From: Takakia lepidozioides
Taxonomy: Eukaryota > Plantae > Bryophyta
DNA length: 64,000 nt
Assembly (NCBI GenBank): GCA_030704615.1
Contig: CM060731.1
Coordinates: 56,234,001-56,298,000, forward strand
Reading direction: 5' to 3'
In this document: positions 28,920 through 63,605 of the stretch, piece by piece
Layout of the letters: the number at the start of each line of letters is the position of its first letter
Numbering within the stretch: position 1 is the stretch's first letter
Notes under the pieces: model-generated
What the model saw: the letters and a program-made list of their open reading frames with translations, nothing else
Told to the model about the DNA's origin: nothing
Databases searched by the model: none
Program-made: the position numbers and the translations under genes

Positions 28920-31420
28920 ATGGGAATGCGGTCCCGCATCTCAGTGCGACATTATCCATTCGTTGATTGTGATCGGAAGTGCGGCACCGCATTTCCGTCA
29001 ACAGAGAAACCAAAATACTGGTGCAACGGAAATGCGGTACCACATTTCAGTCCACTGTAAAAGCAGACCCATGGTGGAACGGAAATGCGGTATCGCATTT
29101 AGGTCCAACGGGACTAGGAACACATGGTAGAAAATAATTGCAACAACGCATTTTCATCGACTGGGACACTTTGGATAGGCAGGAACGGAAATGTTCTGCC
29201 GAATTTCCGTCCAGTCTCTTTCAATGGAATCCAATGGACGGAAATGAGGTTCCGCATTTCCGTCCGGTGTGCTACTTTCGATTGCTGTTGGACGGAAATA
29301 CGACGCCGCATTTCCATTTTGCATCTTAGTCATGCACCAGTGCGACGGAAATGCGGCACCGCATTTCCATTTTGCATCTTAGTCATGCACCAGTGCGACG
29401 GAAATGCGGCACCGCATTTCCGTCCGGGGGAAACCTTTATACTCTCCAGAACGGAAATGCGGTGCCGCATTTCCGTCCAACAAGTACGGTATATGACAGT
29501 GGAACGGAAATGCGGTACCGCATTTCCGTTCTGATTGAAAATCATGAACCACTGGAACTGAAATGCGGCACGGCATTTCCGTCCGAGTCGCACCTTCCGA
29601 CATTCCACAATGGGAATGCGGCGCCGCATTTCCGTTTTGTATCTCAGGCATAGAGCTGTGGGACAGAAATGCGGCACGGCATTTCCGTCCGAGTCGCACC
29701 TTCCGACATTCCACAATGGGAATGCGGCGCCGCATTTCCGTTTTGTATCTCAGGCATGGAGCTGTGGGACAGAAATGCGGCACCGCATTTCCGTCCGGGG
29801 GAGACCTTCATACTCTCCAGAACGGAGATGCGGTACCGCATTTCCGTCCCACAGCGAAAATCGTGAACCACCGGAACTGAAATGCAGCACCGCATTTCCG
29901 TCCGAGTACACCTTCCGACATTCCAGAACGGAAATGCGGCGCCACATTTCCGTTTTTTATCTCAGGCATGGAGCTGTGGGACGGAAATGCGGCTCCACAT
30001 TTCCGTCCGGGAGATACCTTCATACTCTCCAGAAGAAAATGCAGTACCGCATTTCCCTTCTGTCTAAAGATCGTGAACCACCGGAACTGAAATGCGGCAC
30101 CGCATTTCCGTCTGAGTCGCACCTTCCGACATTCCAGAATGGAAATGCGGCGCCACATTTCCGTTTTCTATCTCAAGCATGGAGCTGTGGGACGGAAATG
30201 CGGCTCCGCATTTCCGTCCGGGGGAAAACCTTCATACTCTCCAGAAAGGAAATGCGGTACCGCATTTCCGTTCTGTTTGAAAATCGTGAACCACCGGAAC
30301 TGAAATGCGGCACCGCATTTCCGTCCGAGTTGCACCTTCCAACATTCCGGAACGGAAATGCGGCGCCGCATTTCCGTTTTCTATCTCAGGCGTGGAGCTG
30401 TGGGACGGAAATGCGGCACCGCATTTCCGTCCGAGTCGCAGCTTCCGACATTTCAGAACGGAAACGTGGCGCCGCATTTTCATTTTCTATCTTTGGCATG
30501 GAGCTGTGGGATGGAAATGCGGCACCGCATTTTTGTCCAGGGGAGACCTCCATACTCTCCAGAACGGAAATGTTGTACCGCATTTCCCTCCCACAACGAA
30601 AATCGTGAACCACCGAAACTGAAATGCGGCACCGCATTTCCGTCCGAGTCGCACCTTCCGACATTCCAGAACGGAAATGCGGCGCCGCATTTCCGTTTTC
30701 TATCTCAGGCATGGAGATGTAGGACGGAAATGGGGCTCCGCATTTTCGTCTGGGGGAGACCTTCATACTCTCCAGAAGGGAAATGCGGTACCGCATTTCT
30801 GTTCTGACTGAAAATCGTGAACCACCGGAACTAAAATGCGGCACCGTATTTCCATCCGAGTTGCACCTTCCGACATCCAGAACGGAAATATGGCGCCGCA
30901 TTTCCGTTTTCTATCTCAGGCATTGAGCTGTGGGTCGGAAATGCAGCACCGCATTTCCGTCCGGGGGAGACCTTCATACTTTCCAGAACGGAAATGCGGT
31001 ACCACATTTTCGTCCCACAGCGAAAATCGTGAACCACCGGAACTGAAATGCAGCACCGCATTTCCGTCCGAGTCGCACCTTCCGACATTCCAGATCGGAA
31101 ATGCGGCGCCGCATTTCCGTTTTCTATCTCAGGCATGGAGCTATGGGACGGAAATGTGGTGCCGCATTTCCGTCCGTGGGAGACCTTCATACTCTCTAGA
31201 ACGGAAATGCGGCACCGCATTTCCGTTCAACAACTAAGGTGTGTGAAGGTGGAACGGAAATGCGGCGCCGCATTTTCGCCCATCAAGTACGGTATGTGTA
31301 GCTTCGGGATGGTACTTAACGGAAATGCGGCGCCGCATTTGTGTTTTCACTCTAACTCATCAGACGCTGTTACGGAAATGATATGTGAACTCGTGGACCA
31401 ACGGAATTGCGGCACATGTC
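28920..31420. repeat. Array of about 45 palindromes GGAAATGCGGYRCCGCATTTCC with a 53-bp period
   Basis: Copies at 29240, 29294, 29347, 29400, 29453, 29506 ... 31203, 31256; 31-bp spacers; 4-spacer (212-bp) higher-order repeat in the centre. Confidence 0.97.
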
Positions 31421-31689
31421 TGCACTCTATCTGACTGAAGTGGCAGGAGGCGGCTCAGCCTGACCGTTGGTTAATGATGTTTGTTTTTCGGACGGCAGGC
31501 GTACACTTGACGATTCAAAATTCTTAATGACGCATAGTCCACGAGGAGACACTTTCGTCCCAGCCTTTCGAACCCAAGTGGTGCATCGCCACCGTTTCAT
31601 CTTCTTTTGTCGTGTCTACTCAGTCACCCCTCTCGCGCCCTTTCCATCTGCACTCTTCGCCCCTTTTCCCTGTCTTTGTTCTTCTTATG

Positions 31690-33830
31690 CTCGAACCTGA
31701 GAGGGAGGGAGTTCGTGCATCAGAGAAGAGACATCGTCGCATGCTCCGAAAATTGTACTTCGGACGTAGGCCAATGCCGAAGGGGAGGAAGCAGATGCGT
31801 CTACAGGAGGAGATTGACATCTCGCAGCAGCAGGCCATGCAGGCAACCTAGCCACCAGTGAGAGCTCCGTGCTATCGGGATGCGCGCAGCTGATCGAGCA
31901 CCGAATCCCCCATCATTTTTCTTCTGCAATTCTTAGACTGTATGCTAGGAGACTTGAATGCAGAAGATGTTTGCATGCCTAACCGGAAAGGTGGACGTGC
32001 TGGAGGGATCGCAGGATTCCGAAGAGCCGCAGGAAGAGTCCGTGGAGCTAGCTGCAGCACGCACACCCAGCCGATCCACAAGCACGGGTCTTCCTGCCGG
32101 GCCTAGCCCTGTGCATTTCAAGGACACGGCTTCAAAAGGCAAGTCTTTGCAGTTCAAAACCCCAGAGAGCGATTCGCGTTCGAAGGTCATGGAGAATCGG
32201 CAGCAGGGGTTGGACCCTTCTCCAGCAAAGACGAAGAAGAAGCAGCCCGTCCTTCAACTGGTTTCTGAACCGGACCAGGCCGTTGCCCCCCCCCCCCCCC
32301 CCCACCCAGGCGAATGAAGCAGAAGGGTACAGGGCAAATTCAATTGCAGCAGACATCTTCACCTGCAAGAATGAGGAAGCACAAGGCAATCAGGGGGAGG
32401 GCGGAGCAGTCTTCCGCAAAACCGATTCCTCAAGCTGAAGCCCAGTTCCTGCTTGATTTCCAGCCTGGTGATGTTGGGGGCGTCTCTGCTGCAGCGAAGG
32501 CAATGGGATCGACCGATTTCGTCGATCTGTTACCAGAGGAGGGTGCTGCCGCTCAATGTTCATAGCAAGACCTGACCACCATTGAGGAAGATCTTCATAA
32601 TACTGCAGGCCCGCAGGAGGCCTCTGCAATGGCAGAATTGCCCGCAAAGATTCTCCAGAGTTGGGGATGCTCCAACTGCTCAGCCCCTACTGCCACCTGC
32701 AGAAATGTCTCCGAAGGAATTCCAAAGTGCAGCGGATACAATGTTGGAGGAGACACATAGTAGCATTGGCAGAGTTCTGGGCAGCAGGGTATTCCAGCGG
32801 ACTCTTTGAATCCCACTCTGTTGCATGGTCTCCCTTCCCATCGTCAGACAGGCACTTCCCGGAGATGTGGATAAGCTCAAGTTTGCATTTCGAGAAGGGT
32901 ACCGTCTAGGTTCGCCAGCCTTCTACGTTTCCATTGAGAATGAGGACAGCGAAACTCGTGGACCCACTGCGGATGAATTGTCAGCATGGGATACCCACTG
33001 GCACACTCGCAACGACGAATTCGAGGCAACGCTGAAGGGTGATCCAGACTTCAGCCATATGTCGGGTAAAATGTTCTTTGTGTGGGACGGGAATCACCAA
33101 CTTCTTGCCTGGTAGGAGTACATCAAGCAGAACCATGCCAAGCATATTGGCTGGCATTACATGGTGGAGTGTGTCATCCTCAAGGTGAAGGCGGCAGACT
33201 CCTCCCTGCTCAAGAATGCCATGGCGGACCTCAACTCGTAAGATACTCATACCCTCCCAAGCACGTTCGAAATGCGGTGCCGCATTTCGGTTTCCAATCT
33301 ATTTTTTTCTATGCTTCCGTGGACTGAACTGGAGAGTGTGCCTTGCAGGGTCACTGAAAATGCGTACGTGCATACCCACATGGCACATATGCTGTACAGG
33401 GTGAGGAAAACTGGTCTCACTGATCCGCACATGTTTGCGGAAATGCTGGAGCCCGAGCTCATTCAGAAAGCCGTGGCAAAAACTGACCGACATGGTATCG
33501 TCTCACTATGGATGGAATGGTGGAGGTGATATACAAAGTAAGTCGTCCTCCCATTTCCCTCTGCTCATCCTTCCCCAATTTTCAATAATCTTTCCACATG
33601 AATCGAATGTAACGCTTCTGCATGTTTTTGTTGGCAGTCAAACATCAAGCTGGATTTGGCCCATGCCAAACGCTTCTTCATGGAAAGTGAGGGGCATGTC
33701 AAAATGTTGCAGTCATTGACTGAGCACTTGAAGGAAGCCGGGGTCAAGTCCAGAACGAAATACAAGTCAAAGCTTGTGAAGCTGGTGGCCATTGCAGATC
33801 CGGCACTTGGAAAGGACTTCATCCCCGAGA
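31690..33830 (+). pseudogene. Intron-containing gene with a ParB/Srx-like domain
   Basis: IPLCCMVSLPIVRQAL..KLKFAFREGY..FYVS..FFVWDGNHQLLAW (DGxHR-type motif with R>Q); GT-AG introns at ~33238-33348 and ~33538-33637; stops. Confidence 0.6.
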
Positions 33831-34690
33831 TTGCAAAACCAGGGTGTCGGAAGGCTCTTCGGCAGCCGCCTTCTTCAGTGCTCTGCCCTTCAGACCCTCC
33901 ATGGTCTTCATGTATGCCAACTTGGCTGCCCGTCCATCCAAAGCCACCAAGAAACTCTCATTTACACACTGGACTACTGTATCGGGGTCCACTTTTTCCA
34001 CCGGCTCGAAAGGGTGCCCCCTCGGGGGGTTGAAGAGTGCCTTCTTTGCCGAGCCTGTTCTCGTCCCTCTCGTGACAACGGTGGGCACAGGGGATTTCGG
34101 CTGCGTTTCGGGGGGTGGGCTGGTTGCAAAGTCTCCATCGGAGTCCTCTTCGTCACCCTCTTCCTGCTCTATCTGTTTATGCTTCTTCGTTTTCTTGGGT
34201 GTCACAACTGCTGCTCCTTGCTGGCGAGTCCTCTTCTTCGACCCCTTCTGTTGAGCCTGCACAGCTGCATCCACCGTCTTCTGTGCCATCTTAGCTGCCT
34301 TTCTGGATTGTTCCAGAGCAGCAGCTTCCTTTGCCGACTCTGGCCTAGCAGGGACACGTCTTTCCTTTCTCTTCTCTTCTGCTTTCGCGTGCAGATCTTT
34401 CTCAGACTCGTCAACAATTCCGCCAGACATGTCCAGGTACCACGGACATCTAACGAGATGCGCGGCATGCCATTGTTTTTGCATCTCCGGTGTGTAGACA
34501 CAGCTTGGGCCCGCCACGGTCCAAGCCATGAAGAACGGGGGCTCTTGAGCCAGGGCCCCTGTCTGAAGAAGCACGTATTTCATATACCTGCAGGGCAGTC
34601 AGCATGCGTGAGCAAAAGTTGAGACCAACATACTCGCAGAGTGCAACCGAAAACATAAAATGTGACTGCGGTGCCGCATTTCCCAGACAA
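33820..34690 (-). pseudogene. Inverted coding segment, probably downstream exons of the ParB-like gene
   Basis: 254-aa ORF (FFMAW..WHAAHLVRCPWY, then K/E-rich) abutting the break in the + gene; its intron carries the same palindrome at ~34667. Confidence 0.5.
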
Positions 34691-34797
34691 ACCTCATAAT
34701 CAAGCTTCGCATACAAGGGCAACTGGGCTTCACCTGCAGGTGAGCACACGATGTCTTCAGAAAGTAAGCAAGGGGCATCGGGCTGGGCATGGTGTAG

Positions 34798-36191: not shown

Positions 36192-36397
36192 CCTAGTTAT
36201 CATTCCGTGACGTGGCACTGACACGTCGGCCGTCACGTCCGACGTGCGTCACGTCACGTCGAATTCGGACGTTTACCCACGTAATTTTTTTTACATTTGA
36301 CTTTTACGATTTACTTCTACCCTTTGTAATGACATGGCAGCTACGGTGTAAAACAGACGTGGCCAATTATTAATATTTATTAATTTTTTTTAAAAAT

Positions 36398-37035
36398 GAG
36401 TCCGCCTATATTGGCGGTCGCATATAATTTATTATTTTTAATAAAAGTGACCGCCCATATTGGCGGTCGCCCGTAATTCATTTATTTTTAAATGAAACGA
36501 CCGCCGAAATTGGCGGTCGCCCGTAATTTATTTATTTTTAAATGAAGGGACCTCCCACATTGGCGGTCGCCCGTAATTTATTTATTTTTAAAATTGGCAG
36601 TCGCCCGTAATTTATTTATTTTTAAATGAAGCGACCGCCCATATTGGCGGTCGCCCGTAAGTTATGTATTTTTAAATGAAACGACCGCCCATATTGGCGG
36701 TCGCCCGTAATTTATTTATTTATAAATGAAAGGACTGCCGAAATTGGCGGTTGCCCGTAATTTATTTATTTATAAATGAAGCGATCGCTCATATTGGCGG
36801 TCGCCCGTAATTTATTTATTTTTAAATGAAGCGACCTCCCATATTGGCGGTCGCCCGTAATTTATTTAATTTTAAATGAAGCGACCACCCAAATTGGCGG
36901 TCGCCCGTAATTTATTTATTTTAAAATGAAGCGACCGCCCATATTGGCGGTCGCCCGTAATTTATTTATTTTAAAATGAAGCGACCGCCCATATTGGCGG
37001 TCGCTTGTATTTTATTACATTTTAAAATAAGCGGT
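36398..37035. repeat. Palindrome array GCGACCGCC-n6-GGCGGTCGC with a 50-bp period
   Basis: Copies at 36449, 36499, 36549, 36633 ... 36983, with AT-rich linkers. Confidence 0.95.
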
Positions 37036-37359
37036 CGAGTGTTTTTTTTTTCTTAGAAATCCAGGGACCCGCTGTGTGGCGTTTTGTTTTTTATTTTTAA
37101 TCATGAAGCGGCGCCTCGGCCAGCCACGGGTCAGGAAAAACGAAACAAATGGGATGGGGGGAGGTGGTTTTGAACCCTTGACCTCTCCCATGTGGGTGCG
37201 CGTGGCGAGGTGCGACTGGCTAGTCGCGCCTTTTCAAGCATAATGCCTACGAAGATACCATCCACACGCATTCATTGCTATTTTTCTGAGGTTTTGGACC
37301 CTATAGTGGGCAAAGGTTTATACAATGTCGGGGGTTGTGAGTTCAAGTTTTGGGGCGGG

Positions 37360-38035
37360 ATCCTTTGTTCCAAAATCACCCTGTTGTCTGAATCGTTGCC
37401 CCATTTTCTGTCAAGGTTCATCATGTCGTGTATTGTCTCCCCATTCCACCAGGGAGCGGAAGCAGAGTTCCAGGAATGCGATTGCTTGCTTCGTTTCCGG
37501 AAAGTGCGCAGTAAACTTGCATGGGCACTGGTGTGCATCATGGATGCTGTCCACAAGAACGGTGTCTTGTATAACGATTTGTCCCCCGACAATATCTTGT
37601 TACATTTTCCAGATGACACCGAGGGGATCAAGATTGGGGTGTGTGATTGGGGCTTAGCCACCCCATTGGGCATACGCAAAGTCTCGCCGTACCAGTTTGA
37701 AAATCAAGACAAGCTAGATCAGGAACTCGCGAAAAGATGGTGGGTGGAAAAATATATTGCATCGGTTTTCAATGCGAATGTCACGCCCTCCCCCCCCCCC
37801 CTCCAGGACATGACGTCGGAGGCCTTTGCCGTTGGGAAGATAGCGGTACGAATAAATGACCGCGTTCATTATGATCAAAGTATATTCCATGATCAATTTA
37901 CGGGAGGTTGTTGGCATTCAATGCTACAAAGGTTGTACGACAACAACAAGAATGAGATAGTCACATTAGCCCATGTAGTACTTCGGTTCATGGGCAACAT
38001 TCAATTGGCCTGAGCCGAAAGACGTATATAGGACG
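37360..38035 (+). pseudogene. Protein kinase C-lobe (TE cargo); N-lobe lost
   Basis: VHKNGVLYNDLSPDNILLHF..IGVCDWGLA..RWWV..SEAFAVG. Confidence 0.85.
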
Positions 38036-38119
38036 GAGTAGACCATAGTCTCGTAGATATGACATTTCTAGCGGTATAATGGTTCTTTTATGAAGACATA
38101 ACTCAATTTTGATCGTGCA

Positions 38120-39650
38120 TATAATAAATAAAGTCCCATTGTAAATACTACATTGCATATGCTCGACCCTGGCACCTATCATCGCAACATAAATGGTTTG
38201 TGTACTGGCTCACTGTTTATATTTGTAATGTTCCAAGGTTTTGGATAGGGTTATGAGAAAACGATATATTAGTTCCGTAGGAGATAGACAACAAACGTCT
38301 CCTCTCATTCAATTGTGCGACACTACCATGAGAGGCATGGATCGGAAAGTAATAGGTGCACATGCGACCTCTGAACGTTTGATACTAGGTCTCTACTTAA
38401 ACGTGCGGAGGTCGCATGTACACCTATTATTTTTTTATCCATGCCACTCATGGTAGTATCGCACAGTTGAATGAGATATGGAATGTTTGTTGTCCAACTC
38501 CTATGAATCCAATATATCATTTTCTCAGTACCCTGTCAGAAACATTGAAACATTCGCAGTTACAAACAGTGCCACAATACACGGCCGGTTTTGTTGAAAT
38601 GACATTTGTGAGGTTCGAGCGTATACAATTTATTATTTACAACGGAATTTTATTTACTCGGGGGACCGGTACTGCTGTTGGAGCGCAACTGATGGTGCGA
38701 GTTCTCTATTGATTGGAGCTGTCATAACCAATGTCAACAATCATATTTACGGTAAGGTGTTTCATGCTATTGTTGTTCCTCTAGCTGAATTCTGTAGTAC
38801 TCTTTTTTCTATTCCCATGCCAACGTCCTCTGAGACTGTCATGTTCAAACGGACGTATTAGCCACCCCGGCCAGCTTGCAGGCTGTAGCTATGGCCAACC
38901 ATATATTGAATGAATTGGAGATTTTGTGCGAAGTTCCTGGTTTCATGTCCGTGGTGGCTGATACGGAATTCGGAATATGGCAGTCGCAGTGGACCTGATG
39001 TTGTTGGCATGAGAGGAGCAAAACGATTCCTAAATAATTCTGCTACATGAACATCGGCAGTATGAAACACCTTGCAGTACATATGATTCTTGATATTGTT
39101 TGCACGGATTATTTGTGTTTGTGCTTTCAAGTGGCGAACATTTCCGTCATGGTGCGGAAGACGTGCATTGGCCACATTAACCGGTTGATGTGATACCATT
39201 TCACAAATGTATCACATGAACCGTTCCATGTGGCCTGCGGGAGTCTTCGATGGGTACAAGATCAATGTGGCATACGAGATCTGCTTCCACCAACAAACAT
39301 GTGATCATTTCAGAAGCGCTAGAACTTTGAAGCGACGATAGGCAAGGTTCTTCATCCAGATGTTCAACATGCTGAGGTCTTCTGTAATGTCTCTTGCTTC
39401 GTAATGAGGTGCTTCTTCAACTCTTATTTTTCCAATGCTAATATCTTCCATCTGGAACATATCCACACATGCGTATATAACTTAAAAAAACAAATGACCA
39501 TCAAAACTGGAAGCTGGCGATGAGGCTTATAAAATTGAGATGGTCATTTGTTTTTTAAGGATTTCTGCACACATATGTGGATTTGTTCCAGGTGGAGAAT
39601 ATTAACATATTGGATAAAGTGGACATGGAGAAGCACCGCATTACGAGGTA
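38120..39650. other. Three consecutive long imperfect inverted repeats
   Basis: Foldbacks at ~38120-38660, ~38690-39155 and ~39398-39646. Confidence 0.8.
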
Positions 39651-39719
39651 GGATACACTACAAAAAAAGCTTCAAAGGGCATATCATGTAACAGGTCCTA
39701 ATATAATCGAAGACAAAAC

Positions 39720-41095
39720 CTTATTCATTCAAAGGGCGATTGAATGGTTGCCCATCCAAATGATTTTTGTTTGCTTTCAATCTTTGCCACTATGATCAAC
39801 ATACCATGTATCAGGTCCCGGACTAATATCAGATCAATCGAAATTCATTCGATGGCTCAACGGATAGTTGGCCATCGAAATGATTTTGGTTCACTTTGAG
39901 ACTTGGCCACTATGTTCAATGTGCCATGTAAGAAGCCCAGAGTAATATGAGATCAATCGAAATTCGTTCAATGGGCCAACGGATGGTTGCCCATCCAAAT
40001 GATTTTTGTTCGCTTTGAAACTTGGCGAGTGTGTTCAATGTACCCTCTGATACGTCCCAGTGTAATACGAGATCAATCAAAAATCGTTCAATTGTCCAAT
40101 GAGGCGTTCACTTGTCATCTGGTTTTTGTTCAATGCGAAAAAAAAATCTTGCAATGCGTGCACGGCTATTGCACCCATTGAACGGATGTGGTTGAAGCCC
40201 CCTCATTTGCCCGCATGTGCTTGAACATGTATGCGACACATGTGCGGAGACACAACAGACGAATAAATCATTTGCCTCCCTATCGACGCGCTCCCCCCTC
40301 AAGCCATTCCACAATTTAATTGAATTTAAATTTATTTTAAGCCAATAAATAGGTTTGCATTGCCTTTCAATGGGGGTTTCTGGCACGTATCGATTTTGTT
40401 TTTGGCTCAATTTTGTTCTACGGCTTCCAGCATCCCACGGCTACTCCCCCGCCAAAATTTGGACCAATCAAAAATGCCCCAAAAAAAAAGTATTATCTTC
40501 ATTCTTTATTGCAAAACTCTCTATGAAAGAGTGCATGAAGTAAAACACAAATCAAGTTTGGAGTGCAAAACCTGTGCTTTTGGGTCCAAATGAATTTTGA
40601 TCGCTCCCAAATTTGGCACGCACGTTGCATATGGCTACGTTACACACCCCATTCAAAAACGGAATGAAAAAAAAATCGTGAGCACGCGAAACACAGTCCA
40701 ACAGGTCCCAAAGCAATAACAGCTCCAACAGAATACATTCAACGGGTGAACAGATGGTTGCCCATTCAAATCAGTTTTGTTAGCTTCCAAACTTTGCCAG
40801 CGCGTTCTAGACAACCTTTCACAGGTCCTGGACTAATATCAGATCAATCGAAATTCATTCGATGGCTCAACGGATAGTTGGCCATCGAAATGATTTTGGT
40901 TCGCTTTGAGACTTGGCCACTATGTTCAATGTGCCATGTAAGAGGCCCCAGAGTAATATGAGATCAATCGAAATTCGTTCAATGGGCCAACGGATGGTTG
41001 CCCATCCAAATGTTTTTCGTTCGCTTTGAAACTTGGCTAGTGTGTTCAATGTACCCTTTGATACGTCCCAGTGTAATATGAGATCAATCGAAATT
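39720..41095. repeat. ~121-bp tandem repeats in two duplicated blocks
   Basis: Units gatcaatcgaaattc..cggatggttgcccatcc at 39720-40100 and 40740-41095. Confidence 0.85.
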
Positions 41096-41632
41096 ATTTT
41101 GTGCTTTGAGAACTTTGTGGGTATGTTCGTAGAAATATCATAGATTTTGCGAAATGATTATGAAATACGCAGGGACCACGCGAAATTTGTTTGGAAGAGG
41201 ACCATTCATAACTCGTTATAACTTATTTGTTAACATCAATTTTCCTTGTTCTCCAGTTTTCGGAGTTCATTGCAAATACCCATATACACGTCATAACCAA
41301 ATATGACACCATTATAAATTTGTTTACAGGGTGAACTACTTCTTCCCCATCATACGAGTGTAAATGTGAAGAAAACGCTGCTCATGCAATTGAAATTGGC
41401 AGGTGCCGCACATGTGCATTGTGTATTAACAAAATTGGTGATATACAAACTTGGCGGAATGCCATCACTGTGTTTTCCAACAATATTCAAGGTACAATAA
41501 AAATGCATATTGTATATGTACTATGCTGCGAGTCATTCAAAGCCTAGTCGTCACTGTCCGAGGATGTGGAATTTGATGTTGTGGCCTGATTTGCACTGCC
41601 AATTGCCAGAGCTTGCGACCGTGATCTCGTGG

Positions 41633-43875
41633 TCAATGAGGGGCCCAATGGCATGTGATCAATTCTGGCCTGCATCCGCCTACTACTCGCGGCGAAAGTT
41701 GATTTTTTTCTTCACTCTCACGACGTGGCGGAGGTGGATCGAGAACAAGTGCTCGGGGTGCATGCAAATCGGCAACGAGGCCGTCCACATCCGGCAATTT
41801 AGCCCCCGAAACACGATGATAACGGTCTGTCCATAATCGCCTCAATTTCTCTACAACTGCCTTGATGGTACTTTTGAAACTTTCCAACTGCCTCTCGTGG
41901 GCCCTGTCCCTAATCATTGTGTCGTTTCGACGATAAGCCGCCTCGTACGCATCATTCATTCGGCGTTGACATACTATAGCATCTTCCAGTTCGGACAGCA
42001 ATAAATGTCTCCCAATCGGTTGTCGGTCATACAATTCGTTCTCCTCCAGCACCCATGGAACCTGTGGGAGCCGGATAAACCTGGACCTTCTTTGACTCCA
42101 ATGCCCTCCCAGATTGTGGCAAAACTGCTCTCTCTCCCACTAATCTCGAATACCTCCCGCATGTATGGTTATCTCCCAATCAGATGTGACCCATAATTAC
42201 TGGGGATCTTTGATGTATGTCGGGTTTCCGGCATGTATGTCATGCATCTCTCTGTCTGCATCCCATACCAAGTTCTTGCCCCAATGCACACAATTCAGAA
42301 ATGTGTATGGTAGCCCATCCAATGGGAGGTTGTGTCGATTGTATTCAAAACCTATGGGCATCCGATCCTCCAAGCCCACCAGCTCATAGAAACGGCGATG
42401 GATTGGTGTACGACATTCTGGGCAAGCGCTCGTCCGCAAGGCTTGCGGGATAAGACATGTGAGATGGAACATATGTCCATATGATCCAAGCACATGACAT
42501 CCCTCTGGACCGTATGGATTCCTACACATCGAACAAACTGTGTTATCTGATATCCATGACGACAAAACGCCTCGTGGTATCTCCTCTCTCTGGGCTGGTT
42601 TGATGTGGCTAGTCATCCTTCTTGTGGTGTCCGACTCTTCCTCTATCTCTAATTCCCAATTTATGCTTCTGTTCGACCCTAAAATTTTGTGCTCACATCG
42701 ATCGAACATAGAATCCATATCTGCCCAATTGGTATACCCGGCGAACACGCTTGATGCGATGCAGAGATCGTTATACCTTTGCATGTTGGCATAAATGTTA
42801 TCTATGCTACGGTTCGACATGCGTGCGACACGTTGCAAGCCTGACAGTGCCCGCTCTACCCGTGCTTCTCTGGAGGCCAAATGGGTCGCCCATTGTACCC
42901 AATTCTCCCAATCGCCATTCAATGGGACCCAAACCTGAATCTCTAGCGTTTTGGACAAGCGTCATGCAGTTGCCATGGCAATGTCCCGCTCCTTTGTAAC
43001 GCGGTTGACATCTAATATTGGGTTCATCTCCGATTGAATGACGACCCTCGAGCATTCCCCGGTTTTCAGTACTGGTTATTTTCCTTTCCTCCTTCTCTCA
43101 TCCGCAATTCGTTGTTCCTCAACCATGGTTTCATCGGCCACAGGGTCAAGGACGTCCGTAACTTCCTGAATGTTGAGGTCAATACTGCGATTGGGCATCG
43201 CAAACTTCGCGTCCATATCCACGACGTTTGTTCGATCCTCATTGTGGACAACAGTGCCTTCATTGTTTGGAGGCATGTATTGCAATGTAGCTTCCAACTC
43301 GGCTATGCGCAGTGTTTGCCAGTCTAGTCGGTCCTGCAGGGTCCTGATTCGCTGGTTTCTTTCCGCCAGTTGTTCCTCTGACATTGTATTCCGAACGTGT
43401 CCGGGATGTACTCCAAATCGTATAGCAACCTTGCGTTCCTCCTACTAGCAGTTTGCCAATTCACTGGACGCAAAAGTATGACCTCCACTTACAACATGGC
43501 TGCCAAGGTATACGGGATTTGACCCTTTAAGAGAGGTTGATCCCACAATGTGCAATGCACCTCATTCGCCCTATGCTGGAAATGCAAGTTCGTGCAAGAT
43601 CTGGACTCTACGTAATTGTTTCGGGTTTGCACGTCAAGCCTATCCAAAGGCCACAATCGATTGATGTGGTACCATTTCACGAATTTTTTGCATCTCGCCA
43701 TCGGCCACCGGAACTCTTCCGGAACATCCTCCCAGCCCTCTTCTGCTAGTATGTTAGGGTCACCAAATACTTCCCAATTCAAGTCTTGCCTTGACCCTTT
43801 AATTTTCTTAGGGGGCGGTCCATGTTCATTGGGGTCATCTCTTCCATGACGGTCATCGTCCTGGCCCTCTGCCAT
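41633..43875 (-). pseudogene. RING-H2 finger protein (TE cargo), broken into several ORFs
   Basis: CSMC..GSYGHMFHLTC..CPECR (third Cys replaced by Tyr); N-terminal PPPKKIK; coiled-coil-like segments. Confidence 0.75.
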
Positions 43876-49662: not shown

Positions 49663-49849
49663 ATTTGTTAATTTTCAAAATGTATTTGCCACTGCCACCA
49701 TGTCGGCGACGTGGCTGCTTAAGTGGCAGTATTTTACCTGGTACTATTTTTACCAGAATATTCCCCGAACCTGACGTGACGGAGGTCCCGTCAGCGTTAG
49801 GTCTGACGTGACCTGACGCTGACGGACGGACGTGACGCTGATAACCGGG

Positions 49850-54108: not shown

Positions 54109-57100
54109 CGAGAAGAAAACCTATATACATATTAATTATGGAAACATGTTTCCAGTTTTATAATCTATTTATCCACCCTGTGGGGACCATGTTTCCCTAC
54201 ACTGACATGGTCCCCCGAGTAACTCACTAAGTTAAGTACAAAAATAGAAGGGCAACTTATCATTAAGGGGCTTGCCTCCATTTTTTATTTATTTTTCACT
54301 TTTACAGTTAGTGCTAAAAAAGGGCGTTGACTCTCTCTAGCGTCTAGACCCAGGGGGGGAATAGCAACTAGGGAGGGTCCAGAACACAAACGGGAGCACA
54401 ATGATGTCATCACTTGCACCGGTCAACTTCCCTTTAAAGCTCTCCAATATTTTTGCATTAGTCTTTAATTTAAATTGAAAAGTGTCATTTGAGGAACTTG
54501 CCTAGGTTAGAAGTAGTACACAAAGTGTGCCTCCCAACTTTGTATTGTAAAATTGCATCTTTAAATGTACTGGTTCGTTTTCTAGGTCGAGTTCCTATCT
54601 TTACTGAACCCTGTGTGTGTGCCTCAAGGTGTCAAGGGGTTTTAATTTCCCCAAATAATCCCAAATAAGTAATTCAGGGCCTCCGGCCCTGAATTTCCCA
54701 TAAAGTTATATCAGGGCCACTGTCCCCTGTTTTTGTTTTTTTGTTTGTTTTCCTTCCCTGTAAGAGAAAAAGAAAGAATGTATCCAATAGCAAGTGGTTG
54801 GTGACGCCATGATGGCATGCCACACCTGCAAAGCGGCTTTCTCCCTCTGCTCCTTGTGTAGCGAACAAGGAGTCATCAATGATCATACTTTAAGGTTTTA
54901 ACGCGTCCCTCATCACACCGCCACATGGCACAGACAAAGGCCCGATTAAGGTGACCTTACCAAAGTCAACAAGAACATGAGGGTTGGATCTGCTTGCTAC
55001 CCTACTACGTCATACCAACTGTAATGCTGAGGTTGGATTTACCACGTGGCACCTGATCTTGGCTCCAAACTGAGAATACACTCTCTCATAAATGAGCCCA
55101 TATTTCACGGGGTATGATGTGGCACGTGGGGCTGGGTGTTTGCGTGGTGCAGCCCGGCCCGGTCCACCGTCCGCCGTGCCATGTGCATCATCGCATACTT
55201 CCAACGGCATCTCTTGCCCACCCTTATGCAATACCATACATGAACGCCATCCCATACCATTATGCCACGCATTAGTAAAGAAAATATATTTTATTATATT
55301 CTTGAATATAGATAGCATATTGTTATACCGACATACATTATATTCATGTAATCTTTTATAATTCAGGGTATAAAACAAGCGGCTAGTCGCGTAATGGCTC
55401 CACCCTAATTTTTAATTTCGCGACCTAATTACAAAATTGGAATGCTAGCATTGGCTGTCCTTATCTATTTATTTTATTTAAAAACAAATTAAAACATACC
55501 ATCAGCACTGACAATTGCTTGTCCCCCATGATAACAATTGATTATGATTATTTTATTATGAGTATGATTTTAAAAAAATATGAATTTTAGAATCAAAAGA
55601 TTTTGTGTTTACACCTTGACAGAAAATAACACTATTAACTTTAATGCAATGAACAAATGCGAAAAGATAACACTGAATGTGATGGTGTGAGGTCTGGATT
55701 CCTACCTACCTATCTTTTGGGCATGGATGAATGATTATGAGGATGACACAGGATGCGCGCTCGTTGAGTATTGCGGATGACAGATGATAGAAGCAGGATG
55801 AACTGAATAGTTGGTTTTCGGATGGACGAGGTTAGAATAGCCGTTACGTATTAAGCCCCGGTACAGCTGGATGTATTAAGTTGGTGTTGTCTTTAGTTAA
55901 CAGTTAGATTAGGATTAGGATTAGGTGAGGTGGCTTGATTGTGTGGCCTAACTAGGAAGGCATCTGGACAACCAATGAATGGAGGCCGTTTGGCCTAGAT
56001 TAGATAACATGCTTAGATACTATATAATACGGTTTTCCTAAGCAAAAGGGTGGTGGATTTTATCACAGATCTTGTTGCGCACCTCACTTCGGTAAGCTCC
56101 CCTTCATGTACTCGCTTTGATGCACGCGCCTAACTCCTAAACTGGCCGCCGGGCCAACTCGGAGCTTCGGCTGCTCACTGGGACATAACGGTCCCCCTTT
56201 GCTTCTCCACAAGACCCTTGCTCACTTTGGGCCTAGTGGAAATTCCTTTTGGTTGTTGGCAGTCCGGAACAGCTCGCTACACCTTGGTCGTTTTCCGGCT
56301 CACACGCTTACTTACTAGTTTTTGGTCACCAACGGGCTTGCACCGTTCTCGGGGTTACTATTCCAGGCTATATATACTTCTGTGACTGTCCGCGGGGGTT
56401 TCACAAACAACCCAGTCATTTTATGGCGAACCACCACGAAGACCCTCGATTCCCTGTGATGAGTCGCGGTGAGTCTTGGCCCACCTACCACGGCCCCATT
56501 GGACCGTGATGAGTCCCAAGACTCCCCACGACTCCCACCACAAGGTCTCCGCCCCATGGTGAGTCATATGCCATCCCCACTAAGACCCACTAAGCTACCA
56601 CCACCCCTCGTGGAACCACCCCTACTGCAACCTGGTGTGCGGGGCTCCACCTAGTGAGCGCCTCCGCCTCCTTGAGTGCCTTGGGCATTCAAGGGTGCTT
56701 CAGCCCCCGTACCTATTGTTGCCACTGCCCCCACCACAGGGGCAACCCCTCTTGTGTCCCGACCCCCTGCCCTCAAGGCAAAGGGCCGCAACACGCACCC
56801 CTACCAACAGGAAGTCGATGTCCTCATCGACTTGTCCATTTTGTAGAAACTAACATCCAAGTTGTGGCGTCCCACATCAAGGAGTTTGTTTCCGTACCAT
56901 GGCGTCCCATAGTAAAGAACCAAACCCCCACTTGACTCTCTACTCCCTAGCTAGTTTGGCCGACTTCCTCCAAGTCCCGGCCAAGGGTGGAGCCTCTCCA
57001 GCTCCACCTAGTGCACTCTTCTTGGCCTACTTCAAGGCCAAGGAACGATCCTCCCCGAGGATCGAATCGCCTTACTGCAACAACATTGCCTGCGACCGCT

Positions 57101-57357
57101 CATGATGCCGCTTCTTGGTATCACCTTGAGCAAGGGCTCACCTTGAACCTTTTTTTACTAGGAAGATAACCTTGAACCAACCGTGCGCCCCAATCACTAT
57201 AATTGGGTCCGCCTTGGAATGCTAGCCTGAGGTACGGGAACACGTCGACGCCGCACTACGACTTCGTCTCGAGGTTACACGATTATAGTACGTGAACGGA
57301 AGCACGTAGCTTCCGCGTTAGTCCGCACTACAAGCGGGTCGTTTTTGTTTTTGGTTT

Positions 57358-58058
57358 GTGCAAATTTGTGTTGATTCTATCTGCTGCATGCAATGGCGTC
57401 TCCTTCCTACTCTGAGTCGCTGTTTCCTGAGATCACTCTTGAGCTCAACTTTGAGCTTACCTTTTTACATGAATTGCGACATCTGCAAATACGCTCCTGT
57501 TGATGCCAAGGAACCCTGGACATGTGAAGAGATCGTGCTGGACACTCCCTCTGATTACTGGATTGTCAAGTTCGAGGAGGAGGCCGCTGAGGAGGCAACG
57601 AAAGTAGTAACCATTGCCGCTCAAAAGCGTAAGCAAAAACGTAAAGTGGACAAGGCACTGCAAGGGGCTTTGGCTGGGAAGTTGCTGCAGGAACTGCATG
57701 CGGAGGAGATTGCTCAAAGAATTCTATTTCAGTACTCAAACAACGTATGAGTGCTGGTGAACGATTTAGCTGGGCAGAAGTGGGTGTTCCTAAGTTTATT
57801 GTCTCCCGTGAGATTGACCGTGACTTGGAAAGCTTCTCGTATCCCAACAGGCCCAGTCCTTTGTGGCTCTGGGAATTTGTCAAGGGTGACACCGCTATTG
57901 TGTTTGCAAATCTTCGTGAGGCTAAGGTTACTGCTGCTGTTGCTGATCCCAGCTGGGAAGAGGTAGTAGTTGGGGTGCTCGAGCAATGTCCTAGTTGCAA
58001 ATTTGGACGTGATGTGGCGTTGACGGGTCAACGTCACGTCCGACGTTACTGTACATAA
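57358..58058 (+). pseudogene. Unknown cargo ORFs inside the LTR element
   Basis: Two abutting ORFs with CxxC motifs and a basic helix; no family recognised. Confidence 0.35.
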
Positions 58059-58097
58059 TTATGTTTATTTATTTTACTTTACTAGTGACTATTTACT

Positions 58098-58896
58098 ATG
58101 AGAACCGACGTGACAACCGATGTGGCCTCATAACGTGGATTTAACGACGAGTGTTTGGCAGTGAAGTTCCAGCATCCGGGTGTTATCTCATATTTTGCTG
58201 TGAATGCACGTGAAGTAAAGGGTTACACTCTCTGGTGGAATGGGGGGACAAAACGCGACATGATGAACCGTGACAGAAAATGAGGCAACGATTCGGACAA
58301 CATGGTGATTTTGGAACAAAAGGGAACAGAAGCATAGTTCCAGGAATGCAATCGCTTGCTTTGTTTCCGGAAAGTGCGCAGTAAACTTGCATGGGTACTG
58401 GTGTGCATCATGGATGTTGTCCACAAGAACGGTGTCCTGCACAACGACTTGTCCCCCGACAACATCTTGTTGCATTTTCCTGCTAGCACCGAGGAGATCA
58501 AGATTGGGGTGTGTGATTGGGGCTTAGCCACCCCATTGGGCATACGCAAAGCTTTGTCGTACCAGTTTGAAAACCAAGACAAGCTAGAACGGGAACTCGC
58601 GAAAAGATGGTGGGTGGAAAAAGATATTGCATCGGTTTTTAATGCAAATGCCACGCCCGCCCCCCCAGGACATGACGTCGGAGGCCTTTGCCGTTGGGAA
58701 GATAGCGGTACGAATAAATGGCGGCGCTCATTATGATCAAAGTATGTTCGAGGACCAATTTACGGGAGGTTGTTGGCATTCAATGCTACAAAGGTTGTAT
58801 GACAACAATAAGAATGAGAGAGTCATATTAGCCCATATAGTACTTCGGTTAATGGGCAAGCCATTCAATTGGCCTAAGCCCGAAAGACGTATATAG
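58098..58896 (+). pseudogene. Protein kinase paralog B (LTR cargo)
   Basis: NDECLAVKFQHPGVISYF..YTLWWNGG; HNDLSPDNILLHF; CDWGLA; frameshifts. Confidence 0.87.
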
Positions 58897-59116
58897 GACG
58901 GAATAGACCATAGTCTCGTAGATATGAGATTTGTGGCGGTACAATCATTGACCCGTTGTACACTGTCACTCTTCAAGATTCGTGGGTGTGGTGTTTGATT
59001 ATCCCATATGATGGATCCAGGTGCCATGGCCAAGTAACAAACCATTAAAACATGATGGTACGAGACAAACACAATTGAAAACAACATTTATTCAAACATG
59101 ATGTACAGTCAAAGGT

Positions 59117-60330
59117 CTACAAGTTTTTATCCATCCTCCAGCAATTTTTGGGCTCAGGCCAATTGAATAGCCCCATCATGAAACGCTTCACAACATTTTC
59201 TAGTTTGTATCGCAACTCTACTGTGTTTACACACAAGTTTTCCAGAGCCGAAGCAAAACATGTTCCAGTAGACATATCGTTGAGTAGGCTTGCATCGAAC
59301 ATGTTACCCCCATTTATTGCCTGGACTATCTTCCCAATTACAAAGATCTCTGATGGCATGGTTAGAGGGGGCATACGAGGTGTGCCATGTGACTGGTTGT
59401 TGGCTACATTATGAACAATTGCAATTTCAGGTGCAATCCACCATCTATGTGCGAGAGTCTTTATCATCTTGTCTCTGCTCTCGAAAATGTACAACGTGGT
59501 TTTTGGGTCATCCGTCGTGGAGGCCATCCTCCAATCGCATACCCCGATGTACACATCTTCAGACCCTTGTGGAAAATGCAACAAGATGTTGTCGGGGAAC
59601 ATGTCGTTGTGCAAGAGGTGGTGATTATGGACGTTGAGCATAATGTGCAAAAGTGCCCATGCCAATTGGGTGCGATTTCTGTCGGAATTGAATCAGTCGG
59701 TTGACCTCCTACATTTCCTGCTCCGTCCCCCGTCGTTCCATTAACTCCCTGTTATCCCGATCATTCCCCCATTTCCTGTCAATACTCAACCATGATCATA
59801 TAATCCCCCCATTCCACCAATGTGTGTAACCTTCATTTCGACGTGGATGCAACGCAAAATACTTTATAATGCCAAAATGATGGAACTTTACAGCCAACGC
59901 CTCATTGTTATGTTGGACTTTGGCAAGCTCAACATTTGTTTCCCTGGGCGTTTTCCCTGCTAACTCCCAGGACGGAGAAATGAATTGATCCCCAACAATT
60001 CTAACCCTCCGAATTGTACCATACCCTCCCTGTTTGGGCGCGTCGAGTTATTGTACCTATGCGTTTGTGGATATGTATCTTACTTTCAATGCCGCATCCG
60101 TGGACGAGGACCCTGCCTTCCATGTGAGTGGTTTCGTACGTCGTTTGGCGTGGGCCTTTGCCATGTCAGACCACCAATCCACAAGCACAAACAATTCCTC
60201 CTCCGAAGTTGGCATGTAACCTTCAGCTACAGGTGTTATCGTAACAAACTTGTCCATAGTTTGCCTCAGATTCCATGTGGAATCATGGGCCCGAACCTCC
60301 ATTCATTATCGGAAAACTAAACCCAGATTA
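59117..60330 (-). pseudogene. Protein kinase paralog A, near full-length (LTR cargo)
   Basis: QGGYGTIR (G-loop), WELAGK, NEALAV, WWNGG, HNDMFPDNILLHF, CDW, WWIAPE; N-terminal DSTWNLRQ domain. Confidence 0.88.
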
Positions 60331-60654
60331 TTGATAACCTTATATATTAGCGGACCAATTTCCTCACCCTCTATTGGTATAGTACCCAAAGCAAACTGTC
60401 TCCCGCAGTCCCAGGAAAAAAAAAGCAAAAACTCCTCCCCCACACAAATACTTTCTCCCCCCCCCCCCCCCCCCACGGCTCAGTCCTGGCCACCGAAGTT
60501 GAAACTCCAAGAAGCCCCAGAACCGCACTCACAGAGAGGAAAAAAAGTGGGTTGGGAATGGGGGGTAGGCACTTATGTACTACCTAGAGAGGCCTGCCTG
60601 GAGCGGCGCACGACCGCCTCTGCTGCCCATTTGCGCCTCGACACGTGTCCAGGT

Positions 60655-60940
60655 AACGGTCGCACATATGGGTGGTTGCACCTAATAACAAAACAAAAAA
60701 ACTGTTGCGACCCCCCCCTACTGGTGGTCGCACCTTTTTAAAAACAAAACGAAAATGTGCGACCCCCCCTAAGCGGTCGCACTCAATAACAGAAAAGAAA
60801 AATTCTGCGACCACCACCGGCTGGTGGTCGCCATTTAAAAAATAATTAAAAATGTGCAACCACCCCTTGCTGGTGGTCACACCCAATTTAAAAAAAAGAA
60901 AAAATGTGCGACTACCCTTTGCTTGTGGTCGCACCTATTA
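60655..60940. repeat. Short palindrome array TGCGACC-n-GGTCGCA, about 5 copies at ~50-bp spacing
   Basis: Copies at ~60706, 60758, 60806, 60855, 60907. Confidence 0.8.
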
Positions 60941-61328
60941 AAAAAAATTGAAAATGCTGCACTCATTTAAAAAATAAGTAAAATTGACGCAGTTATAGTA
61001 CGCACACGCGCCGGGTGCGCACTAGCATGTGAACTCCCAAAGAAGGCGCAAGTTTCCTTGCCCCTTGGATGGGAGTCACCCGATTTCGGCGCAACACACG
61101 ATTAATCCAATTTACCTCTGCCACTTTTGTAAGGTAGCATGCATTCTACACACTAGCCAACCATACCATGCATCACCATTCCAAACAAAATAGGAAGCAC
61201 AATATTTGGAAACCATTTCATTTATAACAAAATTTGTACAACACAAGTTTTTGCAATCGGATCCCTGAGCTAGCTAAGCAGGATTAAACATGCATTTCCT
61301 TCCCCACGATCCCAGGTTGATGTCCCCA

Positions 61329-61710
61329 TCAATGTTTATTCCGCTTTTGAGGTCGTCTTTCCAAAACTGCAACCGCCTCAGATCCGTTTCCCATTTCTGA
61401 GGCACGCACCCAAGTTGCCTCCACTTGATGATAGCCCTTCCATTTCACGAGATACTCCGTTTCTCGATTCTTGAACCTCCTCGATTTAAGCACTGCCTCC
61501 ACCTCGTACTCAGGTTCATTTTCATGATCCAACAACACAGGTGGCGGACGCAACACTTGATGCCGATTCGGACGCGCTTCATCTTTGAAGTAAGGCTTCA
61601 AAAGGGAAACGTGGAATACAGGATGCACCTTGCTGTTTGCCGGCAGCTCCAATTTATACACAGCCTCATTTATAACCTTTCGGATGCGAAAGGGCGGGGC
61701 CGACCCCATG
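61329..61710 (-). pseudogene. Integrase C-terminus plus chromodomain
   Basis: PFRI..VYKLELP..VHPVFHVSLLKPY..YEVEAVL..YLVKWKGY..ATW. Confidence 0.92.
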
Positions 61711-62684
61711 ATGAAGCCGATCTCAAGGACGATCGTGTACTGAACTCTAAGCTCTGATATCAAGTGTCGCGCACCTCACTTCGGTAAGCTCCCCTTCATG
61801 TCATAGTTACTCGCTTTGATGCGAGCGCCTAACTCGCAAACTGGCCTTCGGGCCAACACGGAGCTTCGACTGCTCACCGGGACATAACGGTCCTCCTTTG
61901 CTCCTCCACAAGACCCTCGCTCACTTTGGGCCTAGTGGAAATTCCATTTGGTTGTTGGCAGTCCGGAACAACTCCCCACACCTTGATTGCTTTCCGGCTC
62001 ACACACTTACTCACTAGTTTTTGGTCACCAACGGGTTTGCACCGTTCTCGGGGTTACTACTCCCTACATATACTTCTGTGACTGTCCGTGGGGGTTTCAC
62101 AAACAACCCAGTCATTTTATGGCGAACCACCACGAAGACCCTCGATTCCCGGTGATGAGTCGCGGTGAGTCTTGGCCCACCCACCACGGCCCCATTGGAC
62201 CGTGATGAGTCCCAAGACTCCCCACGACTCCCACCACAAAGGTCTCCGCCCCATGGTGAGTCCTATGCCACCCCCACTAAGACCCACTAAGCTACCACCA
62301 CCCCTCGTGGAACCACCCCACCGCAACCCGGTGTGCGGGGCTCCACCTAGTGAGCGCCTCCGCCTCCTTGAGTGCCTTGGGCATTCAAGGGTGCTTCAGC
62401 CCCCGTACCTATTGTTGCCACTGCCCCCACCACAGGGGCAGCCCCTCTTGTGTCCCGACCCCCTGCCCTCAAGGCGAAGGGCCGCGACAGATCTTGTACG
62501 GTGTACCTCTGATGTGACTGGATATGTGTATGAGTGTTTGGATGAATGTGAATTGGTGAGGTTTATCTTTGTGCTAGGTTCCATCCTATCAAGCGGGTCA
62601 CTGCCCTACTGTGCTACAACCCTCATACCTCCCTCATACTGGTAATACCGAACTAAAAGGGGGAATATATCCCCGGCCCCGAAT

Positions 62685-63230
62685 TTTTGGTGGAGATGTT
62701 GTCTAAACGCCTTTTCTGGATTTTTGGACTTGGGTTTTTTTCCCGCTAGCTCCCAACGCTCCGGTATTTTAGAATCACCAATAATCCTACACTGACGGAC
62801 CTTAGCATACCCTCCTTCTTTGTAAGGGCCAATCTCTTCCACTTCGCAGTAGAGTTCAGATAATAAAGACCAGTTGTGCCTCCCCAACCGGATGACCCCG
62901 CTTTTCAAGGGACAACCCTAGTCCGGCGATGTGAATTCTAATTTGCCGAGCAAGCCCAATACTCAACATGTCGCATTAACTCAGCTTCGGCGGAGGGCAC
63001 TTGACCCTCGGTTGTTCTACCCTTCCATGTCTTCATTAGCTGCCTCAAATTCCACGTGGCGTCTTTCGCCCTGCTTTGGATCCACCGATTGAACCTCGTC
63101 TTGTCCCTGTTCGCCGTCCACTTAACCCCCGCCAAAGAGTTCGTCATTTTCCTCTCCATTTTTTGCTGAAAAATCTGAAACCCCACCCATCCATGCCTGA
63201 CATAAGCACTCTCCAGCCTCATCATGTCCC
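62685..63230 (-). pseudogene. Protein kinase paralog C, N-terminal domain and N-lobe only
   Basis: DATWNLRQ..; KEGGYAKVRQC..WELAGKKPK; truncated just before the outer PPT. Confidence 0.82.
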
Positions 63231-63244
63231 TACCCTTGAAATAT

Positions 63245-63605
63245 TTCCACTTCAGGGCCAGCCAGTCTAGGGACTTAGCCCGAAAATGGCTAAGTCCCTG
63301 AACGGCAATAGGGCCTGGAACTGGAAAATGGCGTCGAATTTCCAGTTCAGGGCCAGCCAGTCTAGGGACTTAGCCCGAAAATGCTAAGTCCCTGGACGGC
63401 AATAGGGCCTAGAACTGGAAAACGGCGCCGAATTTCCAGTTCCGGGCCAGCCACCCTAGGGACTTAGACCGAAAATGGCTAAGTCCCTGGACGGCAATAG
63501 GGCCTGGAACTGGAAAATGGCGCCGAATTTCCAGTTCCGGGCCAGCCAGTCTAGGGACTTAGCCATTTTCGGAGCCCTGACTGGAAATTCGGCGCCATTT
63601 TCCCT
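63245..63605. repeat. 95-bp tandem repeat containing two different palindromes
   Basis: agggacttagcc-n7-ggctaagtccct and gaactggaaa-n11-tttccagttc, about 3.5 units. Confidence 0.92.

Follow-up and report, generated by a model that had tools for sequence, protein, structure and literature searches.

A 64,000-nt stretch of DNA from the moss Takakia lepidozioides (contig CM060731.1, positions 56,234,001 to 56,298,000; hereafter the window) carries tandem arrays of short palindromes beside genes of transposable elements (TEs). The arrays are a property of two DNA-transposon families and not of TE genes generally. One is a high-copy hAT element with three genes (kinase-like, RING-H2 and transposase) and the other is an unclassified element that resembles Mutator-like elements (MULEs). 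The reading that we prefer, and to which we give about even confidence, is that the arrays would be built-in cis elements of these transposons, namely phased arrays of sites for an element-encoded protein, set beside promoters. An initial annotation of this DNA had claimed that a palindrome array lies 5' of almost every TE-borne gene and had suggested promoter or anti-silencing platforms; its observation is partly confirmed here and its interpretation partly supported. The coordinates of all features are collected in Table 1.

Arrays were detected over the whole window with Tandem Repeats Finder and with an independent palindrome-density scan. Both scans gave the same six places (28.9-31.4, 36.4-37.0, 44.2-45.9, 48.5-49.7, 60.7-60.9 and 63.2-63.6 kb), so that all six arrays of the initial annotation were located, although the one at 63 kb is of a different kind (a 95-bp unit in 3.4 copies). 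The tandem period is 53 bp at 28920-31420, 50 bp at 36375-37033, 53 bp at 44239-45936, 51/102 bp at 48517-49657 and ~50 bp at 60671-60956. Three unrelated palindromes with a spacing of ~48-53 bp had been proposed. There are indeed three motif families in the window (A, B/B' and C), with B/B' shared by four hAT arrays, but the spacing does not extend to array C with its period of 95 bp. The 9-bp half-site GCGACCGCC is common to the hAT arrays at 36.4, 44.2 and 48.5 kb, and a variant of it, GCGACCACC, is found at 60.7 kb. In the first three arrays the half-site is identical while loops and spacers differ, and the identity of whole arrays is 65-77%.

The hAT element ends in CCTAGTTATCA and the reverse complement of CCCGGTTATCA (terminal inverted repeat (TIR) consensus CCYRGTTATCA, 9/11 positions identical) and is flanked by a perfect 8-bp target-site duplication (TSD), CCGACCAC, at 36184-36191 and 49850-49857. 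It is the only TIR pair in the window that has one. The window is land-plant DNA with several PLS-DYW pentatricopeptide repeat (PPR) genes, and the PPR repeats of the gene hit by the insertion continue on both sides of the element, the gene being restored across it. The right tip (49658-49849) carries the same GTCACGTC motifs as the left tip in inverted orientation, and the mirrored motif sets lie within the terminal 100-180 bp.

Three B arrays lie inside this element, two of them near the tips and the third, which we call internal, between the transposase and RING genes. The internal array is ~1.3 kb long (1.7 kb with its flanking modules) and lies 8 kb and 4 kb from the hAT tips. The end of a hidden nested element at this position was considered and rejected, as neither the TIR consensus nor the GTCACGTC motif nor any tip-like sequence was found beside the array; the RING and transposase flanks are equally repeated in DNA contigs. 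The array is truly internal, with the transposase 3' end on one side and the RING gene start on the other. Its position 5' of the RING gene, as initially annotated, therefore stands, but it is equally a position 3' of the transposase.

The internal array is bracketed by three direct copies of a promoter-like module (~110 bp, repeat family D20), of which one lies towards the RING gene and two lie beyond the array. Within each module, read on the RING strand, a B palindrome lies ~65 bp upstream of a G-run and TATAAG. Contig L003 opens with the same TATA...CTCCCCTCACTT core, here behind a C-run, and ~340 bp further on encodes a RING homologue with only 27-29% identity in protein sequence. This module appears to be the best evidence in the window for a palindrome wired to a conserved core promoter. 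In the alignment with a 1077-aa homologue (P0002), the RING ATG at 43875 corresponds to residue 1, which fixes the start codon ~300 bp from the array edge. The contigs that encode seven RING relatives (1.3-4.5 kb) are too short to reach upstream arrays, and L003 and L017 alone are informative. L003 also has a tandem duplication of ~105 bp (L003:55-260) between the TATA core and the ATG. L017 begins (L017:1-125) with CGCGGAC-type motifs in close succession, ~480-600 bp ahead of the start codon of a distant RING homologue (732 aa); this may be another type of repeat array, present in a relative, at which the contig broke off.

The RING gene itself is no isolated passenger. A word search with the RING exon gave no match within the length window, and an exhaustive protein search then gave 111 relatives, including intronless open reading frames (ORFs) of 646-1077 aa. 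The RING and transposase genes were searched one exon at a time. Contigs of four runs were aligned to 41600-47599 (6,000 letters). In the main DNA run 7885 contig pieces fit this region at >=85%, only about a fifth of them at >=99%. The summed contig depth is alike over the RING and transposase regions and drops only inside the array, where assemblies break; the RING gene therefore belongs to the high-copy family and is not one-off cargo. No run registered as RNA contained this stretch; a contig from one presumed RNA run is rearranged and covers only the transposase region, and no transcription start could be read from it. Behind 45313, the loose end of a contig from run X5 (another study) carries the half-site variant GGTGGTCGC at the position of the internal array, which shows that internal arrays in other copies or strains can have the B' variant too.

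The transposase has been damaged. Its ORF at 46569-47780 (minus strand) matches DUF659 in Pfam at E 6.7e-16 and has a BED-like CxxC...H stretch upstream, while the C-terminal hAT dimerisation domain was not found in the remnant by Pfam scans. The DUF659 domain is cut at 47180/47185, where contigs from three independent runs (X1, X5 and X6) diverge from the window. This divergence points to an internal deletion in the window's copy of the transposase, of a piece that most other copies have kept.

Does an array stand at the head of every gene? For six genes this was the case, with the gene head 200-1000 bp from the array edge: kinase H (37243, plus strand), the RING gene (43875, minus), the transposase remnant (minus), kinase A (59692, minus, 979 bp) and the two genes beside array A. 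A promoter-adjacent, protein-binding role for the arrays is plausible. The rule of the initial annotation, an array 5' of almost every TE-borne gene, fails for the endonuclease and the reverse transcriptase of a long interspersed nuclear element (LINE), for a Ty3 gag, for an ORF with an integrase C-terminus and a chromodomain and for kinase B, none of which has a 5' array within the window.

In array A the spacing is 52-54 bp in 42 of the 44 intervals, and a higher-order repeat of 213 bp comprises four unrelated spacer types, with unique spacers at both edges and the phase kept throughout. Pairwise identity is 0.84 between palindromes as compared with 0.37 between spacers, and the 22-bp core has 46 matches in the window against 0.01 expected in shuffles. 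Such a pattern is hard to get without constraint, or strongly biased homogenisation, on the site and the spacing. This bears on the possibility that the arrays are neutral by-products, in which hairpin-prone palindromes in AT-rich non-coding DNA of TEs were expanded by replication slippage or unequal exchange into functionless, satellite-like arrays. A tandem array is present in every intergenic space of the hAT element, including a non-palindromic 119-bp satellite at gene 3' ends, and the left array is 90% homogeneous between units, as after a recent expansion; tandem repeats inside TEs are common (reviewed in PMC9659126). However, the palindrome and the phase are kept while the spacers diverge to near-random identity, the same half-site occurs in three arrays with differing spacers, and the same array design is found in an unrelated element. 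We regard a neutral origin as very improbable.

A more serious alternative is that the arrays serve transposition only. Ac/Ds (AAACGG) and Hermes have subterminal repeats that bind the transposase. The arrays would be repeats of this type, as in Ac/Ds, Hermes and Muta1, and the internal array would descend from the left end of an older hAT that had a transposase gene only and later fused with the kinase-RING segment or captured it; that the array now lies 5' of the RING gene would be an accident of this history. The left and right arrays start ~200 bp from the TSD-flanked tips and can be ordinary subterminal sites, which goes against part of the initial interpretation; the internal array, to which the initial annotation had denied this role, has no tip relic beside it. 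The internal and right arrays are mutually inverted and bracket the transposase, and the left and internal arrays are inverted and bracket kinase H and the RING gene. Hickman et al. are said to have reported in 2014 that the Hermes octamer uses multiple BED domains on subterminal repeats, which would suit this alternative. In the Mutator element Muta1, more subterminal repeats give higher transposase binding and excision (PMC5499845). As in these hAT and Mutator elements, repeated sites are found in the window a short way in from both tips of an element that has TIRs and an 8-bp TSD, and the repeat number could plausibly tune transposase binding. In contrast to the known subterminal repeats, which are 6-12 bp long and lie within ~250 bp of the tip, the arrays reach 0.2-1.3 kb inward from tips that have their own short motif, and a third array lies in mid-element. 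That separate, mirrored GTCACGTC set resembles a true end-recognition signal. Moreover, a role in transposition alone would leave unexplained that no tip relic adjoins the internal array, that array A is central between divergent genes and not terminal, and that the palindrome is integral to each copy of the TATA module. We consider this alternative unlikely.

Array A lies between the leftward and rightward divergent genes of the MULE-like element. The leftward gene aligns over ~550 residues with the hypothetical protein P0001 (aa 30-580, E 7e-65), the one homologue found by word search. It has weak atlas feature matches of WRKY/GCM1/FAR1 type, which is MULE-like (score 0.85-0.91), and matches no Pfam family, so that the initial identification of the two array-A genes as MULE genes has no Pfam support. 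The array ends ~540 bp upstream of the first ORF of the rightward gene. This ORF has weak atlas feature scores (0.86-0.89) to ParB_N and DUF6551 clusters; Pfam at E up to 1 and a PDB sequence search were both empty, and its single-sequence AF2 model (pLDDT 51) was too poor to search. From these data we cannot confirm either the 'MULE' or the 'ParB' label for the neighbours of array A.

The ParB-like candidate is relevant to a further explanation, in which the arrays are anti-silencing platforms. An element-encoded factor would bind the arrays and remove or block DNA methylation over each promoter, as VANC does in VANDAL21, and for array A this factor would be an accessory protein of ParB-like type, perhaps linked to a methyltransferase, with which the element marks itself. 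In sopC of plasmid F, a bacterial plasmid centromere of the sopC/parS kind, there are 12 repeats of 43 bp with one palindrome each. Array A resembles sopC in layout, being made of tandem inverted repeats directly beside an accessory gene of a large DNA transposon. A comparable arrangement is found in red-algal Plavaka elements, in which ParB-like accessory genes have adjacent tandem inverted-repeat arrays (bioRxiv 10.1101/2025.02.11.637652), and Ectocarpus Sola elements carry ParB-methyltransferase genes (PMC12477816). Unlike in Plavaka, the ParB-like nature of the array-A neighbour is a candidate only, and the hAT arrays have no ParB-like gene with them at all.

An architectural match for anti-silencing is provided by the VANC motif arrays of the Arabidopsis VANDAL21/VANDAL6 (Mutator-like) elements (Hosaka et al. 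2017, PMC5735166). In both cases short, family-specific motifs form dense tandem rows in non-coding DNA, either upstream of genes that belong to the element or within them; the elements are multi-gene elements, and repeats are gained and lost. The half-site variants in the window are also specific for subfamilies. The VANC motifs, however, are 8-9 bp long, non-palindromic and in one orientation, whereas the sites of the Takakia window are 22-26-bp palindromes in a strict 50-53-bp phase. The window differs further in superfamily (hAT and an unclassified element), and binding and demethylation are shown for VANC, whereas the window is known from its sequence. No VANC-family protein was found among 60 proteins (59 window ORFs and P0001) scanned against Pfam, there is no verified ParB-like protein in the window, and in neither the kinase-like nor the RING protein can a DNA-binding domain be recognised. 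The arrays form CpG-rich islands within AT-rich spacers (CpG observed/expected ratio 1.2-2.3 versus 0.70 for the whole window), as this explanation would have it. Yet CpG transitions make up ~40% of the deviations from the consensus site, and this decay means that the window's copy is not protected. The CpG pattern fits methylation-sensitive sites decaying in a silenced, dead copy, and it is in keeping with the reading that we prefer. We find an anti-silencing role rather doubtful.

Another known system combines end recognition with gene control. The TnpA sites of En/Spm are 12-bp motifs that occur as irregular head-to-head and tail-to-tail pairs in two subterminal regions only. The window resembles it in that candidate sites for an element protein, with CpG in them, are clustered over a promoter region, which would couple end recognition to gene control. 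In contrast to the window elements, Spm has neither long phased arrays nor a separate array for each accessory gene. By analogy with VANC, TnpA and the ParB-like systems, the architecture of the window would be a variant of published transposon cis arrays.

The 60.7-kb array lies within an element with long terminal repeats (LTRs) of 721 and 725 bp, which are 93.5% identical and have GATCT on both sides. The initial annotation had counted it among arrays in LTR elements. Its presence there is explained by hAT fragments nested in this element, to which it belongs, and arrays that mark nested elements are what the initial annotation itself had set against its rule. Of a second, related hAT the left tip is present, and it can be aligned to the initial 170 nt of the tip of the 13.66-kb element; a right end for this hAT was sought, and as neither a TIR nor a TSD partner was found it is treated as a fragment. 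Next to this tip, kinase B has lost its array and had its start turned round in a rearrangement: in this second copy the kinase homology begins with 93-98 bp in inverted orientation (58223-58320 versus 37364-37461), and no array lies upstream. The B' array lies 5' of kinase A, at a distance of 979 bp, and its other side faces the 3' end of the integrase ORF, 376 bp away; several of its units carry a symmetric change of the half-site, and it goes with a kinase that is only 45% identical to kinase H. The integrase-chromodomain ORF overlaps the inner edge of the right LTR by 10 bp, on the side opposite to the expected 3' end of pol, and the interior of the LTR element is heavily rearranged or deleted. 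Beside array C a kinase gene (kinase C) had been proposed. It was rejected, as a Pfam scan of four ORFs was empty, and so was a tblastn search in which three kinase sequences were used at thresholds down to E = 50.

Several points weigh against our preferred reading, that the arrays are sites for element proteins beside promoters. The sides of arrays that face a gene meet six heads and two tails (6/8 sides), which is not significant (one-sided binomial P 0.14), and a positional rule is therefore not established by this window alone. Kinase B has no array, though it has lost it after a rearrangement. Judged by their flanks, the left and right arrays have the same direction and are not mirror images, and the right one faces away from the gene that it precedes, so that array orientation seems to be cleanly predicted neither by a role in gene control nor by one in transposition. 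Relative to the genes, orientation is consistent for the left and internal arrays and not for the right one; this signal is weak because the sites are palindromic, and it was not used as evidence. The present function of the hAT copy cannot be judged, since the copy is dead (transposase deleted, RING gene frameshifted). Finally, the 119-bp satellite also fills the 3' intergenic space of the hAT element, and repeat formation in non-coding DNA of TEs is therefore general and need not be functional.

Other repeats and RNA-like features were also recorded. Non-palindromic tandem repeats at 21084-21303 (80 bp) and 22780-23215 (70/142 bp), just past the 3' side of a LINE fragment, have no relation to the palindrome arrays. 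The segment 37130-37210, which separates the left array from the kinase start codon, looks tRNA-like on the minus strand (TPsiC-like GGTTCAAAACC), and ARAGORN and Rfam report none there; scans of 26-64 kb for tRNA (ARAGORN) and with Rfam gave no match. A metagenome scan for two successive B palindromes gave 11 loci, which we judge to be chance matches because all of them are bacterial-type DNA of 65-75% GC. The PLS-type PPR genes (17096-19040, 49851-52327 and 35848-36191) have triplet repeats of 295-303 bp that are 76-89% identical within and between genes, which suggests recent internal amplification or conversion of the repeats. The DYW deaminase end of the PPR gene hit by the hAT element is at 52919-53251.

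Table 1. Features of the window (positions are those of the 64,000-nt stretch)
Feature	Position	Strand	Description
Leftward gene beside array A	26861..28464	-	Decayed ORF, related to one hypothetical 582-aa protein
Array A	28920..31420		26-bp palindrome in 45 copies; arms of 12 bp flank a variable central dinucleotide; period 53 bp
Rightward ORF beside array A	32810..33112	+	Candidate ParB/Srx-like reading, unproven
Solitary array-A palindrome	33268..33289		Inside right-hand gene region
Solitary array-A palindrome	34662..34683		Near right limit of element
hAT element	36192..49849	+	13.66 kb, three genes, inserted in PLS-DYW PPR gene
hAT left tip	36192..36375	+	GTCACGTC motifs
Left subterminal B array	36375..37033	+	11 palindromes, GCGACCGCC half-sites, 6-nt loop, period 50 bp; 5' of kinase H
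Kinase-like gene H	37243..38010	+	ATG 37243; Pkinase match limited to catalytic-loop region
Satellite, two blocks (39690-40140, 40700-41151)	39690..41151		Non-palindromic, 119-120 bp, between 3' ends of convergent kinase and RING genes
RING-H2 gene	41636..43875	-	Decayed into four ORFs; frameshifted
Promoter-like module 1	44177..44287	-	B palindrome, G-run, TATAAG; ~300 bp upstream of RING ATG
Internal B array	44239..45560	-	~24 palindromes, period 52-53 bp, inverted relative to left array; 5' of RING, 3' of transposase
Promoter-like modules 2 and 3	45623..45936	-	Duplicates of module 1, far side of internal array
hAT transposase remnant	46569..47960	-	BED-like CxxC...H segment and DUF659
Right subterminal B array	48517..49657	+	Full palindromes alternate with tandem half-sites, period 51/102 bp; 5' of transposase
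LTR element	56073..62489		LTRs 56073-56793 and 61765-62489, TG..CA ends, 5-bp duplication GATCT
Left tip of second, related hAT	57990..58140	+	Runs into kinase B, no array between
Kinase B	58228..58945	+	90% DNA copy of kinase H, first 93 bp inverted
Kinase A	59120..59692	-	45% identical to kinase H
B' array	60671..60956	-	5 palindromes, half-site variant GCGACCACC/GGTGGTCGC, period 49-52 bp
Ty3-type integrase C-terminus and chromodomain	61332..61775	-	No 5' array
Array C	63243..63564		3.4 copies of 95-bp self-complementary unit, two alternating palindromes; no verified gene beside

How could such arrays work? Starting from what is observed in the DNA (the arrays and their phase, the conservation of palindromes over spacers, the element boundaries, the gene orientations and the palindrome-TATA module), we infer that a protein binds, that the element encodes it and that transcription is affected. 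In each array, a dimeric protein that recognises a specific DNA sequence would bind to successive CpG-rich palindromes. About five helical turns separate one site from the next, and bound dimers would therefore share one face of the DNA. The binder would most likely be encoded by the element itself: a candidate for the hAT is the transposase, acting through its BED-type finger, and for array A either the transposase or the neighbouring gene. Transposases have been described as sequence-specific activators (bioRxiv 10.64898/2026.08.24.746577). As the arrays fill the non-coding DNA just upstream of the element genes, their occupancy would co-regulate all genes of the element, and the two subterminal hAT arrays may also help the transposase to recognise and pair the ends.

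A bolder version of this proposal, which we think improbable at present, is that one land-plant genome holds two unrelated families of DNA transposons in which the same device arose independently. In this device a private palindrome would stand every five helical turns before each gene and would be read by an element-encoded protein that keeps the gene set on or shielded from silencing. If true, the hAT superfamily would thereby gain its first self-recognition code of this kind. The shared spacing of ~53 bp would then reflect a constraint of host chromatin, e.g. nucleosome exclusion.

For annotation, an array is the mark of a particular transposon family, whether of a member or of a fragment, and two of the arrays are subterminal. 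Where an array is found within an LTR element, it signals a nested piece of hAT and does not belong to the retroelement. Should the arrays be read by element proteins, the idea of a private cis code known from VANC and TnpA would extend to the hAT superfamily, and the arrays would make it simple to test how the genes of large multi-gene DNA transposons in early-diverging land plants are coordinated, and possibly protected, by the elements themselves.

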